The notes under the pieces are model-generated. The model was not told the origin of the DNA and ran no database searches. It worked only from the letters and a program-made list of their open reading frames with translations. DNA of 64,000 bases, from positions 4,154,001-4,218,000 of the forward strand of contig JBLDXI010000024.1 of NCBI GenBank assembly GCA_047495785.1, in the 5' to 3' direction. This document shows, in pieces, positions 13,713 through 64,000 of the stretch; position 1 is the first letter of the stretch, and every line of letters begins with the position of its first letter. The translations under genes and the position numbers were made by a program. This DNA comes from Lepidodermella squamata (lineage: Eukaryota; Animalia; Gastrotricha).

Positions 13713-16700
13713 TCAGGTATAGTTGACAGTTTTAGAAACAGCGTGTTGGCTGAATCTTCGCATGAAGTCATAACCGGCTCCACCACCGCTGTTGGGCTTC
13801 ACATCATGCAGCAACGTCTGAACAGAGGGAAGCCTCCTGGGTCGCCTGAGACTACCATCAGGGATATTTGAGGATAATCGTCTTGCTTTTAAATATTCCT
13901 GGGTCCATCTAATGGTACAAATCACCCTTTTATCCTCCTCAATAAGCGGCGAATTCTCTGATAGCCGTTCTATTTGCCGCGACAACCGTTCCAGCGATAG
14001 ATAAACTAGATGAAATAAATAGAAGTATCGAGAGGTGTAACTTTATGCTCTGAAGACTTACCATCATAATAAGAACTGCTATCAGCTTGGACCTGATGAT
14101 CTTCATTTGCCTTGACTTTTTTGCCCCGTGAGATAAGCTTCCTCAATTCTTCAGCCAAGTAATCAGAGACTTCTTTGTCCCAGTCGGTATCGCTTTCGAC
14201 GTTGTCAGAAATCCAATTGTAAGTGACATTAATGATGGTCATGAAAATCTGAACGGCTAAGAACATCACAATCGATGAATAAGCCAAGCAGTAGACCATG
14301 ATGAATCGAGACTCAGATCCTAGGGCGATTAAATTTCCTGTTACTCCGATTACGTTTTGCAGCAGGGTCATGATAGAAGCAGTCATAGATCGAAACTCGC
14401 CAAGAGACGAGCCTAGAGCCAGATAGCCAAGACCGGCGAACATGAATGTGATCATTGTGAAAAGAATGGTAAAAGTCGCGATGTCACTCCTGCCCTTAGA
14501 TAAAGTTGCTAAGAACATGCACCAATGCTTGTTGAACTTGAAATGGCGGAAGAACAACAACATTGTCATGAAAAATGTCAACCCGTACAAATTCGCCATC
14601 AACTCGTCCCAATTGACCAGCAGGTCAAGATTGGTGAATGACTTGCGGTCTGTTTGCATCTTTGTGATCACTTTGATGATGGTCGATATGCGGACACAGA
14701 AAAGGCCGACAATGCCGAATGCAATTATTATTGAAAGGAGCTCCAATGAATTCCAGCCGTCTTTCAAATGCTGCACCGCCCCGTTTTTCTTCATGAGATA
14801 GGCAACCTTGATTGCTTCACTGATTAGTAAGATGATCCACAATCCTTGGATAACGTATACTGCAGCGCTGCTGGCGCCAGAGTACTGGTAGAGTTGCAAA
14901 GGGTACACCCGAGTGTGGTAGTTCATTCCACCGGCTGGTGTTGCTTCGAAAACCACTTTCACGGTGAGGAAAAGGTTGATTTGGCTATTGTACAGGTTGA
15001 AATCGACAAAAACGACAGAAGTTGCGTTGTCCAGCCATCTACCTGCTTTCAGATAGTCAACAAATTGCTGGGCTTTCCACATTTTAGTTGGCAGGTCGAC
15101 GTAGTAGCCATCGCTTCGGTAAATGGCGGACCAACCGTTATACGGAACTCCAGCAGTATCTTCTCGGTAAAGCCAAGGAGCGTCGTATGTTGAAATATTG
15201 GATATGTCTATTGAATAAGGTGGTAAATAGACCCATCCGAATGAGAAGTCTCTATTTTCGGAGTTGGAACCGAAGCCATAATTGTTAGAGTATGAATCTT
15301 GACAACGAATGCCTCCGAGATTTTCTGGATAACCGTCAACAAAGGAAATGGGACATGGGCGACTGGAAACTCGCTGCTGCTTGATTCGAATCGGTCCAAC
15401 AAGGACCACGTCATGATTTGGCACAACGTAAATATTTTTCATATTGAAAATTCCGCCGTAGTTCAACTGGTTGCCGTTCAAGAAATTTGGGATGACTTTC
15501 TGGCTGAGCCAGTCGAGAATACGCCCGTGGTCGGATATCGGTTCCAGGACTTCCTGGACTCCGTCAAAAGTTACCAAAGGTTGAATGTCATTTCCTAGCC
15601 GATATCGGTACGTATTTTGAGTAGTGGCAATGACGAGCGCGAAGGTAACGACATATGCAATGTGGTGAGCGATCCCAGCAATAATGTTTCTTAACCGCTT
15701 GAATACAACAGTTTTTTCTGAAACGTTACCTGAAATAATAATGATATGATCATAGAATGATAGGTAAATTCGAAAAACTACATCGCGAGTATACAAGCCT
15801 GCCCATCGCCATACCATCGTCAGGGAGTTTCAACAGTGTCGAAGTAAATATTGACATCAGAACAACTTTCACAGATTGAACTATGATCACATCTTGAATA
15901 ATGTTGAGGCCCATTCCTGACAGCCACTGCAGTGACTTCTCACTGCCCCATTGAAGACTGTAAAGAACGACGACCGATACTGAAACTATGATCGAAATAG
16001 CAACCACTGGTAATGAGGGAAAATCATAACTGGAACTAGCTATAAAGGGACAAGCTTACATGACCAAGCTATACCCACTGTCCAGAATGGAAGTTGTAAG
16101 GGTTTCTTCTTTTTCTTCTTGCCTTTTTCTGTGCTTGAGTCATTCTCAGCATCGTCATCATCTTCTTTAACTGCTGCATTGAAAATAGTTATCCAATTAG
16201 ATTTTTCAGCCGATCGTCTCTTAACTCTCTTGAAGATGAAAGCGATTGCTGTCGTAGGTGGGATGATGATAACACAACTGGCCAAACTTGTGTATAACGT
16301 AAACCATGAAATGCGAAAGAAGCCACCAATATTGATCCCGATCCTCGGCGCGGAGCTTTCTTGCCCGTAAAACAGACAGTTGACCATCATGGCCATGAAA
16401 AGTGCCGACACAACACAAGACAGCCGCTCAACTCGGGTCCAGTTGCTGGGCAGAGGCCTTCTTATAATTGAAAGCCAGGGGTGGCTATCAGTAATGCCGA
16501 ACCTCGAATGACTGGTAACAAGGTATTTGAAGCTTTTGATGACATCTTCTGTCGCAAGATCAGCCTTGACTTTATCACCTGACTGCATCCTCTGCTGAAC
16601 CGGAAAAATGTACTTCTTACCGCCACTCACATCGACAATGACGACCTTGTCCATGAAGATCTGGAAAGGCTTGTTGCCGAGTTCCCAAGGCTTGCTTATC

Positions 16701-61300: not shown

Positions 61301-64000
61301 ATCAACATTATGTCCGGGGGAAACTCACGAATGTTGCAAGTGGCTCCAGCCCAGCCAACAGGACAGGTACATTTGTTGGCGGAGGAGCATGTTCCGCCAT
61401 TGTTACATCCACCAATCGAGCTACAGTCAGCTGATAACCAAAGTATTTAAGTAGAGTTCAAAAGGAGTTAGAGCGGCTCACGTGTTGAACAATTAACGCC
61501 TAACCACCCGGATGCGCAAGTGCACGTGTTTGGGGAAGAGCAGGAGCCATGGCCGGAACAGTTTGCTCGAGATGAGCAATCAGCTGTAGAGAATATAATG
61601 TTTCAATCTCGAAAATTGGGCTCAAACTTAAATCTAACGAGTGCTGCAGTTTTGTCCAATGTACCCTGCCGCACATGTGCAAGTGTTAGGCCCAGTGCAT
61701 GTCCCTCCGTTATAGCAGTTTCCTATTGCGGAGCAGCTGGCTAGAATGAAGATGAGCATTTGAAACTAAAATAATGGGTAGAAGAAATTGTCTAACGCGT
61801 AGAGCAGCTGTTTCCAGACCAGCCAGATTTGCAAGAGCAAACATCCGGTTGAGTGCAGTTACCATTACCGGAACACGAGTTTACGCCGTTGCATGTTGCT
61901 ATTCGGGTTTTTTTCATCATACTTCTCCTGATTTTATAGATAGAAAAATGCTACCGGTTCCGCAGTCAGGAGTCGTCCAGCCAGCAGCGCAGGTGCAAGT
62001 TCCTGGCGCGCTGCACGTTCCACCGTTTTTGCAACCTCCAATGCCGCTACAAACGGCTGGGAACAAAATTGAATCAGTTCGACTTTTATTTAATTGAACG
62101 ATTTTTACAATACCTGTGTTACAATTCGCCCCGGTCCATCCAGCTGTACAAGTACAAGTATTAGCGGTAACGCAAGTGCCGCTATTCAAACAGCCACCCA
62201 GAGCAGTGCAATCGGCTTGGGTAAGATTAAGATGAATATTGAGAGCTGAATTGGCACAATTAGAGCCAAACTTACGAATTGAACAGTTGCTACCAATCCA
62301 TCCTGAGGTACAAGTACAGGTGTTGGCTGATGAGCATACACCGTGCCCTGAGCAGTTATTTCGAGACGAACAATCCGCTGAAGTCAAATAGAGCGTGAAA
62401 TCCTACGAAAAATCAACTCTGAGAGCCAAATTACCAACGCTGCAGTTTGTTCCCATCCAGCCGGCTGGACAGCTACAGGTGTTTGGCGCCGTACAAGTGC
62501 CAGAATTTCGGCAATTTCCGATAGAGGAACAGTCCGCTGTTTGGAAAGAAATCATTTAGCTAGTGATTTTTCAGCAATAAGATGATTTACGATTTGAACA
62601 GCTTGGTCCAAGCCATCCGGCTGTGCAAGTGCACGTATCTGGCTGCGTACAACTGCCATGTCCGGAGCAGGAGTTAACAGCAAGGCATGTTGCTATGGGA
62701 AAGCCATAACGATTAGATGGGAAGTAATTAAAATCTTACCGGTGCTGCAATCAGATGATGTCCACCCTGCAGCGCATGTACAAGTGTTAGGACTGCTGCA
62801 CGTGCCTCCATTCTTACACACACCGAGACTGGCACAGTTAGCTATGAAATAGTTTGAAAAGAATTTCTGCCAATACCCTCACGTGGAAACTTACGCGTGT
62901 TGCAGCTCGCTCCAAGCCACGAAGCTGTACAGCTACATGTATTCGCATTAACACATGTCCCTCCGTTGTTGCAGCCTCCAATCGACGAGCAGTCAGCTAA
63001 AAAATATGTATGCTGTATTTATTTGACAGACTTGCTTATAAAACTTACGGGTAGCGCAGTCCAGTCCAGTCCAACCAGAGTTGCAGGAGCAAGTGCTTGC
63101 AGCGGAGCAAGTTCCATGGCCGGAACACTCATTCCGAGTTGAACAATCAGCTGAAATTAGAAATTATAGAGGAATTAAAATAAAATATACAGCATTTCAA
63201 CACTCACGCGTTGAACAATCTGTTCCCTTCCAACCAGCACTGCAAGTGCAAGTGTTCGCAGCAGAGCAAGTGCCACTGTTTTGACAACCGCCAGGGCAGT
63301 CAGCTGAAAGACAAAATGTTGAATTGCAGAAATTCGCAGCATTTCCCTTACGCTGCGAGCAGTTGGCATTTATCCATCCAGCCGAGCAGCTGCAAGTGTT
63401 GGCAGTAACGCAAGTACCATGACCAGAGCAACTGTTTCGAATGGTGCAGTCAGCTAGGTAGCCATTTGCCGAATAAAGGAATTAGGGGATAACAGATTGA
63501 AAATTGCATATTACCTGTTGCGCAAGTTGTACCGGCCCAACCAGACGAGCAAGTACAAGTATCAGGAGCAGAACACACTCCGCTATTCTGACAACCTCCA
63601 ATTCCTGAACAGTCAGCTTAAATAAAGGCATACTTCAGAGCAATGGAATCCTAATTTTTCCATCTTCTTACGAGTCGCGCAATCCAAGCCAGTCCAACCT
63701 GCACTACAGGTGCAGACATTGGGCGATGTGCAAGTTCCGTGACCGGAACAAGAATTTCGGGCCGGACAAGTTGCTTCAAATCAATTATCATTTTAATTTG
63801 GTGTGATTTCATGGAAACAAATCATACCAACACTGCAGTCTGCAGTTGTCCATAGAGCAACGCAGGTGCAAGTGTTGGGACTGTTGCAAGTGCCTCCATT
63901 CTTGCACCCACCGAGACTGGCGCAATTAGCTATCAAATCGTACTTGAAGTATTTATGCCGAGCACTGCATGCGGCAACTTACGGGTGCTGCAGCTAGCTC
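55316..64000 (-). CDS. Polycystin-1-like gene D, 5'-partial: >=23 EGF exons-GAIN-like-TM1-PLAT-TM2-5-TOP-channel
   Basis: Core ORFs 57803-60103, 57509-57757 and 55769-57493 with [47 protein letters not shown]. Last exon 55740-55316. EGF exons run to the window edge. Confidence 0.9.
60376..64000 (-). repeat. Tandem array of >=23 single-EGF exons in gene D
   Basis: About 102-nt 6-Cys exons separated by about 55-nt introns at a period near 157 nt, mostly alternating CxNGG/NSG-type and CSG[H/N]G-type units. Confidence 0.85.

Follow-up and report, generated by a model that had tools for sequence, protein, structure and literature searches.

Introduction

Sensing in polycystin channels is generally attributed to subunits of the polycystin-1 type, most of whose ligands are unknown. 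The vertebrate family, comprising PKD1, PKD1L1-3 and PKDREJ, has 11 transmembrane (TM) helices. A GAIN domain precedes the first of these, a PLAT domain occupies the first cytoplasmic loop, and the C-terminal part consists of a TOP domain and a PKD2-like six-helix domain; the ectodomain includes a lectin module, and the PKD2 partner is encoded elsewhere. Among invertebrates, the sea urchin REJ protein (suREJ) is PKD1-like, combines lectin and EGF modules in its ectodomain, belongs to a multigene family and acts with PKD2 in sperm. Caenorhabditis elegans LOV-1 has a mucin-like ectodomain, and such receptors act with PKD2 in sperm or in ciliated sensory neurons. Here we describe four genes with the same general organization as the vertebrate family, designated A to D, in a 64,000-nucleotide (nt) stretch of the gastrotrich Lepidodermella squamata (contig JBLDXI010000024.1, here C24, positions 4154001-4218000; hereafter the window), which forms part of a genome of 121 Mb in 151 contigs. 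These four window genes are intact, represent both main branches of their family, and belong to some 35 genes in all that encode PKD1-like 11-TM receptors.

The window genes differ from the vertebrate proteins in lacking REJ, PKD repeats, leucine-rich repeats (LRR) and WSC domains, and, in the standard head, in carrying four fibrinogen-related domains (FReDs) together with a rod of EGF modules. Their family has also lost the triad of the G-protein-coupled receptor proteolysis site (GPS), possesses a furin-type motif and a PLAT domain invisible to Pfam, and comprises about 35 paralogs. Among the 150 best matches, the only FReD-bearing relative is a Branchiostoma lanceolatum protein annotated as 'PKD1L3' (CAH1271112.1; P0102), in which two F5/8C (discoidin) domains, a FReD and an EGF-like module lie upstream of a PKD1-like core. 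It differs in having one FReD, a C-type lectin and the canonical C-x-C-x-H-L-T motif, and in lacking a long EGF rod. The combination of discoidin and FReD on a PKD1-like core is therefore rare rather than unique.

The PKD1-like proteins of Lingula, such as XP_013397107.1 (Kringle), XP_013384713.2 (MAM-FN3-CUB) and XP_013397161.1, have mutually unrelated heads and so follow the same modular principle, and several of them likewise lack H-L-T. Their PLAT is recognized by Pfam, and they have neither a multibasic motif nor a FReD or EGF rod. As invertebrate PKD1-like receptors, suREJ and LOV-1 are also comparable, and the mucin exon of gene B recalls LOV-1; suREJ, however, has a REJ module and C-type lectin domains, and neither protein has FReDs or belongs to an array of such size. 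Soluble FReD lectins, including ficolins, tachylectin-5 and mollusc FREPs, share the FReD fold, and FReD1 of the standard head keeps the calcium-site and GGWWY-type motifs. These lectins are secreted as oligomers, and their FReDs are combined with collagen, coiled-coil or IgSF parts, whereas here four tandem FReDs sit on a channel-type membrane core. The window genes belong to a known receptor family, of which they form an unusual variant.

Modular heads are frequent in that family. The ectodomains of the 30 nearest long relatives carry REJ (19), PKD (9), CUB (5), C-type lectin (5), LDLa (4), Fz, FN3, F5/8C and WSC (3 each) and FReD (1), with MAM, SRCR, Kringle, TSP1, LamG and PAN in one or two each; variable heads on a PKD1-like core are therefore a general family rule. 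On the question, raised in the initial annotation of the window, of whether its architectures are already widespread, variable heads proved common, and the four-FReD head was seen nowhere else. A literature search found no paper joining polycystin-1-like with fibrinogen-related proteins.

Gene models and the common core

Gene models were derived by reading splice junctions, by a splice-aware dynamic-programming model and by hand correction; the boundaries of EGF-rod and N-terminal exons are approximate in all of them. Single exons served as queries for searches and fold prediction, and exons were joined solely for stop checks, apart from one small FReD hidden Markov model (HMM) built with a two-exon join (gene C exons 9+10). 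The window has a GC content of ~45%, and its 34 confident introns measure 46-66 bp, with the consensus GTAAGT...TTTTAG.

As the initial annotation proposed, four polycystin-1-like genes, A(-), B(+), C(-) and D(-), form stop-free exon chains and look intact (Table 1). Polycystin_dom and PKD_channel occupy four large exons with Pfam E-values (E) of 1e-21 to 1e-31, at 14009-15829(-), 34712-36088(+), 37350-39041(-) and 55772-57508(-); across A-D, PF08016 scores E 7e-23 to 2e-26 and PF20519 E 3e-21 to 3e-31. A, B and C start with a hydrophobic, signal-peptide-like segment. The intron positions described earlier as shared are confirmed in that three, all of phase 1, are common to the four genes: before the mid exon, between the mid and TM4-5 exons, and between channel and tail. 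A fourth position is shared by A, C and D only, and an intron within the TOP domain is unique to gene B.

The core follows the same order in A-D: a GAIN-fold stalk, TM1, a diverged PLAT domain, TM2-5, the TOP domain and a PKD2-like six-helix channel domain. Each channel exon is preceded by a mid exon of ~760 amino acids (aa), for which Pfam gave no match in any of the four genes with the E limit raised to 5. From the juxtamembrane region to the channel, core identity is 78-87% between A and C, 49-61% between A and D, and 48-55% between A and B. Hydropathy fits 11 TM helices: the mid exon encodes TM1-3, a 225-bp exon TM4-5, and the channel exon S1-S6; five additional helices are thus predicted before the channel domain, with the N-terminus extracellular.

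An AlphaFold model of the gene A mid exon, built from a 55-row alignment, contains the predicted helices at a predicted local distance difference test (pLDDT) score of 78.7. Residues 475-598 match PLAT (Z 14.2, root-mean-square deviation 1.7-2.1 Å; Foldseek probability 1.00), residues 49-412 match the GAIN domains of CD97, ADGRG6, CELSR1 and BAI3 (Z 9.5-11.3), and residues 415-761 match polycystin-1 (Z 9.7, 26% identity), with Foldseek concurring on PLAT and polycystin-1. Neither direct Pfam scans of the exons (E limit 5) nor a genome-wide PLAT search found PLAT in the window. A profile of the mid-exon alignment with 54 relatives, canonical ones included, reaches polycystin-1 at E 4e-80. Because the fold search, this profile and the Pfam channel domains agree, the four genes are identified as PKD1-like, with a PLAT domain that appears too diverged for Pfam. 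The earlier description of alignable 'GAIN-like to channel' regions is thereby borne out.

S1-S6 aligns with PKD2L1 along its length, and PKD2L1 is also the nearest solved relative of the channel exon (E 1.3e-38), followed by PKD1L3 (E 2.8e-22) and PKD1 (E 9e-11). The filter reads I-G-V versus L-G-D in PKD2, and I-G-F in the metagenome relative P0001; such an altered filter would fit a non-pore-defining subunit of the PKD1 type.

The reported absence of PKD repeats and of a full REJ module also stands: no PKD repeat was found in any exon scanned with Pfam, and REJ (PF02010) has no match within the window or elsewhere along the array. REJ and a Pfam-detectable PLAT occur together in ten further PKD1-like genes, located on other contigs, and in no member of the C24 family. 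REJ is absent at E 1e-5 in 11 of the 30 nearest long relatives.

An exhaustive search with the gene A mid exon returned 1050 relatives, only four of which, all metagenome proteins, cover the GAIN part; the nearest named relatives are PKD1-like proteins of Lingula anatina (30-36% identity). The sole public sequences for the family's GAIN part, and likewise the closest PKD2, are metagenome contigs (P0001-P0005 and P0166; ENA, JGI, Logan). Relatives of the source animal appear to be present in metagenomes and not in annotated genomes.

Fibrinogen-related head of genes A, C and D

The heads of A and C comprise, from the N-terminus on, EGFs, a discoidin-like domain, FReD1-4, a PAN/Sushi-like block and EGF exons. 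FReD1-4 of gene A match PF00147 at E 2.6e-43, 2.3e-36, 3e-4 and 6.6e-18, and FReDs of gene C at E 2.6e-44 and 4.4e-37. The discoidin (F5/8-type-C) match reaches 18 bits against a Pfam cut-off of 28.2, and neither BLASTP against the amphioxus F5/8C region nor a PDB sequence search strengthened it. The PAN match is weak (E 0.07), and Sushi consists of three Cys/Trp patterns seen by eye in the translation only; a genome-wide Sushi search, which scored 150 of 1734 candidates, has no bearing on the window. None of these three domains rose above its Pfam threshold. Of the FReD, discoidin, PAN and Sushi domains first assigned to A and C, the FReDs are therefore well supported (to E 1e-44), and the other three are weaker than stated. 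FReD1, the distal one, alone keeps the calcium-site D-x-D-N-D, N-C-A and G-G-W-W-Y motifs, as read from the translation.

Gene D had been described as having a long EGF rod for its N-terminus. The gene runs off the window, however, and its FReD head lies in the next 6 kb, within the adjoining 10-kb piece L001; the PAN/Sushi block there is 49% identical to that of gene A, and beyond the head another gene begins with its tail and channel exon. Because this continuation carries the same head, A, C and D represent one head architecture, and the apparent difference of D is a truncation effect of the window edge.

The three genes differ mainly in rod length: A has 7 EGFs, C ~35, and D 23 in the window plus ~6 beyond it (~30). 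Nearly all rod EGFs are single 102-bp exons of phase 1-1, and a helical stalk comes after the rod. The repeats are 60-80% alike at the DNA level, so the expansions are not very recent, and Tandem Repeats Finder detected no array in the EGF rods.

Gene B as a chimera with a swapped head

Gene B combines two homologies. Its donor segment (~2.3 kb) matches the domain-X gene L022 (C24:5286463-5289972) over ~2 kb, introns and ~600 bp 5' of the ATG included, and 31097-36304 matches the fibrinogen-headed paralogs L013-L015 at 78-84% nt identity. The interval between them holds a relic EGF half-exon (~30303-30356). Gene B is a DNA-level chimera: it retained the core, whereas its promoter, signal peptide, domain X and mucin exon derive from another multigene family through recombination within the intron between phase-1 exons. 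A and B diverge from a 2.9-kb common upstream region, part of which arrived with the donor segment; B and C are convergent, their stop codons lying ~250 bp apart (36774-37023).

Domain X, folded with 20 paralogs, is modeled with confidence as a concanavalin-A-like beta-sandwich (pLDDT 87, predicted template modeling score 0.84). Foldseek (probability 1.00) relates it to ERGIC-53, VIP36, Emp47p and an Entamoeba legume-lectin-like domain, with TM-scores of 0.59-0.68 at 10-14% identity. Domain X has no Pfam match up to E 10 and no homolog by word search, and its protein-atlas matches are weak and bacterial; it is predicted to be 'lectin-like' at the fold level only. In that sense, the lectin-like domain and mucin stalk first proposed for B correspond to a domain of legume-lectin fold and a Thr/Pro mucin exon. 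Phase-1 exon shuffling, another element of that proposal, is supported by the 102-bp phase 1-1 EGF exons, which vary in number from 7 to ~35, and by the phase-1 exons flanking the breakpoint of B.

At least 44 further matches to domain X occur in the genome (C24:5.17-5.29 Mb, C54, C23, C2 and others), and neither the array pieces that were sampled nor the neighboring Cys-loop gene matched the domain-X HMM. Domain X defines a lineage-specific gene family that has no Pfam family. Its members (L022-L044; for example, C24:5286463-5289972, C54:1.60-1.62 Mb, and others on C23 and C2) start like gene B, with a block of EGF, small exons, domain X and EGF. At C9:4915759-4915989(+), a weak domain-X-like match (E 0.009, 30% identity) lies 3.7 kb upstream of a family mid exon (C9:4919732-4921969), and this locus may be a second, older X-headed family member.

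The core of gene B is 87-90% identical in aa sequence to the array paralogs L013 and L015. The ratio of nonsynonymous to synonymous substitution rates (dN/dS) is 0.06-0.08 in the core and 0.22 in domain X, at dS 0.6-0.9. Because both halves are constrained and ~2170 codons are open, gene B is probably functional.

Loss of the GPS site and a furin-type motif

At the GPS position, A-D read F-K-C/S-S-Y-F-G-D-F, whereas most relatives have C-x-C-x-H-L-T. The H-L-T triad is replaced by Y-F-G in all ten family rows and in the four metagenome relatives, and the same sequences carry an R-x-K/R-R motif; it lies ~27 residues upstream of the GPS position and reads RLRR in A, RYKR in C, RRKR in D and RKRR in B. 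In the gene A model, RLRR sits in the only disordered (low-pLDDT) loop of the GAIN domain, residues 362-380.

The GPS motif is not universal among PKD1-like proteins, and some Lingula relatives also lack H-L-T. Seven Lingula anatina proteins (P0006-P0009, P0012, P0014 and P0018) read F-K-S-N-F-F-G-S-F at this position and have no multibasic motif. Because this clade without H-L-T is also without the motif, the loss of self-cleavage may predate the furin-type motif.

Family size, array structure and selection

PKD_channel has 68 matches in the genome, 32 of them on C24 and 23 of these within 520 kb (4.168-4.69 Mb), and the gene A mid exon has 35 paralogous loci at E<=1e-100. The local expansion noted initially is therefore larger than described, and 'four-gene cluster' understates it. 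FReD matches, at least 150 in the genome, are interleaved with the cores along the array. The wider array was surveyed in alternate 10-kb pieces, covering about half of it. On both strands, each sampled gene with a covered head shows a discoidin-like domain, FReDs, a PAN/Sushi block, EGFs, stalk and core, in that order. Gene B is the only head-swap exception found among the sampled genes, although the other half of the array may contain more, so the idea of generally swappable heads gives way to one shared by A, C, D and every covered head in the sample. Three sampled pieces, L003, L005 and L018 (C24:4258001-4268000, 4298001-4308000 and 4558001-4568000), match no head or core exemplar, so that other genes or spacers must lie between parts of the array.

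The main split of the mid-exon tree separates (D,(A,C),(L019,L020)) from (B,L013,L015,(L016,L017)), and the window therefore mixes old lineages. L016:2349-4442 and L017:438-2531 are neighbors (C24:4.520 and 4.538 Mb) whose mid exons are 99% identical, with dS 0.059. The array is thus still duplicating or being homogenized.

Between A and C, mean dN/dS is 0.04-0.19 in every domain, head and core alike; the head shows a two- to threefold higher dN, with dS at saturation. All parts are under purifying selection, with no gene-wide sign of diversifying selection of the immune type. A pseudogene array was considered and rejected, dN/dS being far below 1. A/C dS is >1.1 or saturated in the head and falls to 0.55-0.86 in the channel exons, a drop that may reflect 3' gene conversion or codon bias.

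Table 1 Genes and features of the polycystin-1-like locus (window coordinates; ~ marks approximate values)
Feature	Position	Strand	Description
Gene A	13713-25521	-	ATG 25521, stop TGA 13713-13715; stop-free chain, GT-AG introns 44-165 bp; Pfam matches; order: signal peptide, ~5 EGFs, discoidin-like, FReD1-4, PAN/Sushi-like, 7 EGFs, stalk, core, tail
Gene A FReDs	21199-23978	-	FReD1 23205-23978, FReD2 22344-23155, FReD3 21619-22288, FReD4 from 21199-21333 into next exon
Gene A mid exon	16060-18345	-	GAIN ~17108-18199, RLRR 17231-17242, GPS-equivalent strand 17120-17155, TM1, PLAT ~16550-16921, TM2-3
Gene A TM4-5 exon	15782-16006	-	Hydropathy
Gene A channel exon	14062-15729	-	S1, TOP, S2-S6; PF20519 E 1.3e-29, PF08016 E 1.2e-24
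Gene B	28411-36774	+	ATG 28411, stop 36774; chimera; gene model and core Pfam matches; order: signal peptide, EGF, two small exons, domain X, mucin exon, EGFs, stalk, core, tail
Gene B donor segment	27817-30076	+	Promoter-proximal DNA, first exons, domain X, mucin exon; 75-77% nt identity (blastn), same block by tblastx
Gene B domain X	28978-29491	+	171 aa; predicted legume-lectin fold
Gene B mucin exon	29765-30046	+	Thr/Pro
Gene B breakpoint interval	30077-31096	+	Long intron between phase-1 exons; both homologies end at its edges
Gene B mid exon	31956-34050	+	RKRR 32895-32906
Gene B TM4-5, S1 and TOP-N exon	34102-34692	+	
Gene B TOP-C and channel exon	34749-36074	+	
Gene C	37023-54383	-	ATG 54383, stop 37023; gene model and Pfam matches
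Gene C N-terminal part	54383 inward	-	Signal peptide, 2 EGFs, discoidin-like 53454-54029
Gene C FReD1-4	50683-53400 and start of 49203-50636	-	Followed by PAN/Sushi-like
Gene C EGF rod	42069-49145	-	~35 EGFs, followed by stalk
Gene C mid exon	39354-41648	-	RYKR 40519-40530
Gene C TM4-5 exon	39076-39300	-	
Gene C channel exon	37352-39022	-	
Gene D, 3' part	55316-64000	-	Stop at 55316; tail, core, stalk and 23 EGFs; 5' end past window end
Gene D mid exon	57811-60163	-	RRKR 58958-58969
Gene D TM4-5 exon	57532-57756	-	
Gene D channel exon	55792-57483	-	
Gene D tail	55316-55740	-	
Gene D beyond window	64245-69917 (window-equivalent; L001)	-	Further EGFs, PAN/Sushi block, four FReDs, discoidin-like

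Next to gene A, window positions 1-13700 contain long open reading frames (ORFs) at 4305-5366(-), 5696-6952(-), 7992-9641(-) and 11220-12458(+).

Candidate PKD2 partners and proposed mechanism

The genome-wide PKD_channel search found no PKD2-type gene in the window, as the initial annotation had observed, and two strong PKD2-like matches on other contigs, at C7:31847-33910 and C1:4597198-4599063. The C7 polycystin-2 orthologue is 55-60% identical to annelid, nemertean, mollusc, brachiopod and hemichordate proteins alike. The closest PKD2 sequence, at 84% identity, is an environmental metagenome contig.

By analogy with PC-1/PC-2 and PKD1L3/PKD2L1, we propose that each protein would assemble in a 1:3 ratio with one or the other PKD2 orthologue and would be the only subunit of the complex that senses the ligand. 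The lectin-type head would bind a glycan or matrix ligand, and an outside furin-type protease, rather than self-cleavage, would separate or prime the ectodomain. GAIN and TOP would then relay occupancy of the head, or pull on the EGF rod, to the channel; the most likely site of action is the ciliated sensory cell. For PC-1, an N-terminal lectin-containing fragment activates PC-1/PC-2 channels via the TOP domain (PMC7728438). The combination of a lectin head with a conserved GAIN-TOP-channel core is compatible with such activation, the cut that GAIN has ceased to make being left to a furin-type protease.

Taken together, an intact PKD1-like family and a ligand-sensing-subunit mechanism with PKD2 form, by this analogy, the reading that we consider fairly probable. 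Several points weigh against it. The ratio of about 35 receptor genes to two PKD2 genes is unusual, canonical binding-site motifs are missing from all FReDs but one of the four, the continuity of head and core is read from gene structure, and the furin-type site is a sequence motif. The channel activity of PKD1-like subunits is itself debated even in vertebrates.

Alternative explanations

The same proteins could instead constitute an immune pattern-recognition repertoire, in which FREP- or ficolin-like FReD heads would bind microbial acetylated glycans, the paralogs would provide breadth and the core would signal in immune or epithelial cells. In the literature, FReDs figure as typical immune lectins of invertebrates, the genome has at least 150 FReD matches, and the tandem array is large and still duplicating, with L016 and L017 99% identical. 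Yet the mean dN/dS of the head (0.04-0.15) and its uniform architecture speak against gene-wide diversifying selection, the canonical site motifs occur in FReD1 only, and the literature search revealed no link between the two protein families; we regard an immune repertoire as unlikely. Gamete recognition of the sea urchin REJ kind, with the lectin head on the sperm surface binding egg-coat glycans and, together with PKD2, triggering calcium entry, would follow the same ectodomain logic as suREJ. It seems distinctly improbable, given that the REJ module is absent here and present in the ten other PKD1-like genes of the genome, that ~35 copies are many for a gamete receptor, and that low dN/dS is atypical of fast-evolving reproductive proteins.

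A structural objection would separate the heads from the cores, making them secreted FReD/EGF lectins encoded beside N-terminally short polycystin genes. Multi-domain ORFs with FReDs only do occur elsewhere on C24, at 3.05-3.45 Mb. In the window, however, introns of only 44-99 bp, with matching phases and no stop, lead from the last EGF to the stalk and from there to the mid exon, and no separate signal peptide precedes the extracellular GAIN part. All sampled genes, whichever strand they lie on, preserve the order and strand of head and core, and F5/8C, FReD and a PKD1-like core are united in one annotated protein of amphioxus. We therefore give separate genes very little credence.

Implications for the polycystin family

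The gain is limited in that modular heads on a PKD1-like core are already common in databases and the functions proposed here are read from sequence. What the window adds is the chimeric gene B, the explanation of the apparent difference of D by the window edge, and the variation in EGF number. In this family of about 35 genes, recognizable lectin-type domains are combined with a single conserved core, and the natural head swap of gene B, together with the variation in rod length, makes the questions of ectodomain gating and ligand testable. A furin-type motif in place of GAIN self-cleavage bears on how cleavage primes these receptors.

A bolder proposal, to which we assign a low probability, is that the ~35 paralogs represent a germline repertoire of glycan-gated channels sharing one or two PKD2 pores, each armed by furin-type cleavage of the GAIN loop and opened by ligand or by the released head. 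If this were true, chemosensory or non-self-sensing would in this animal be built on polycystins rather than on G-protein-coupled or ionotropic receptors, and head swaps such as that of gene B would add specificities.

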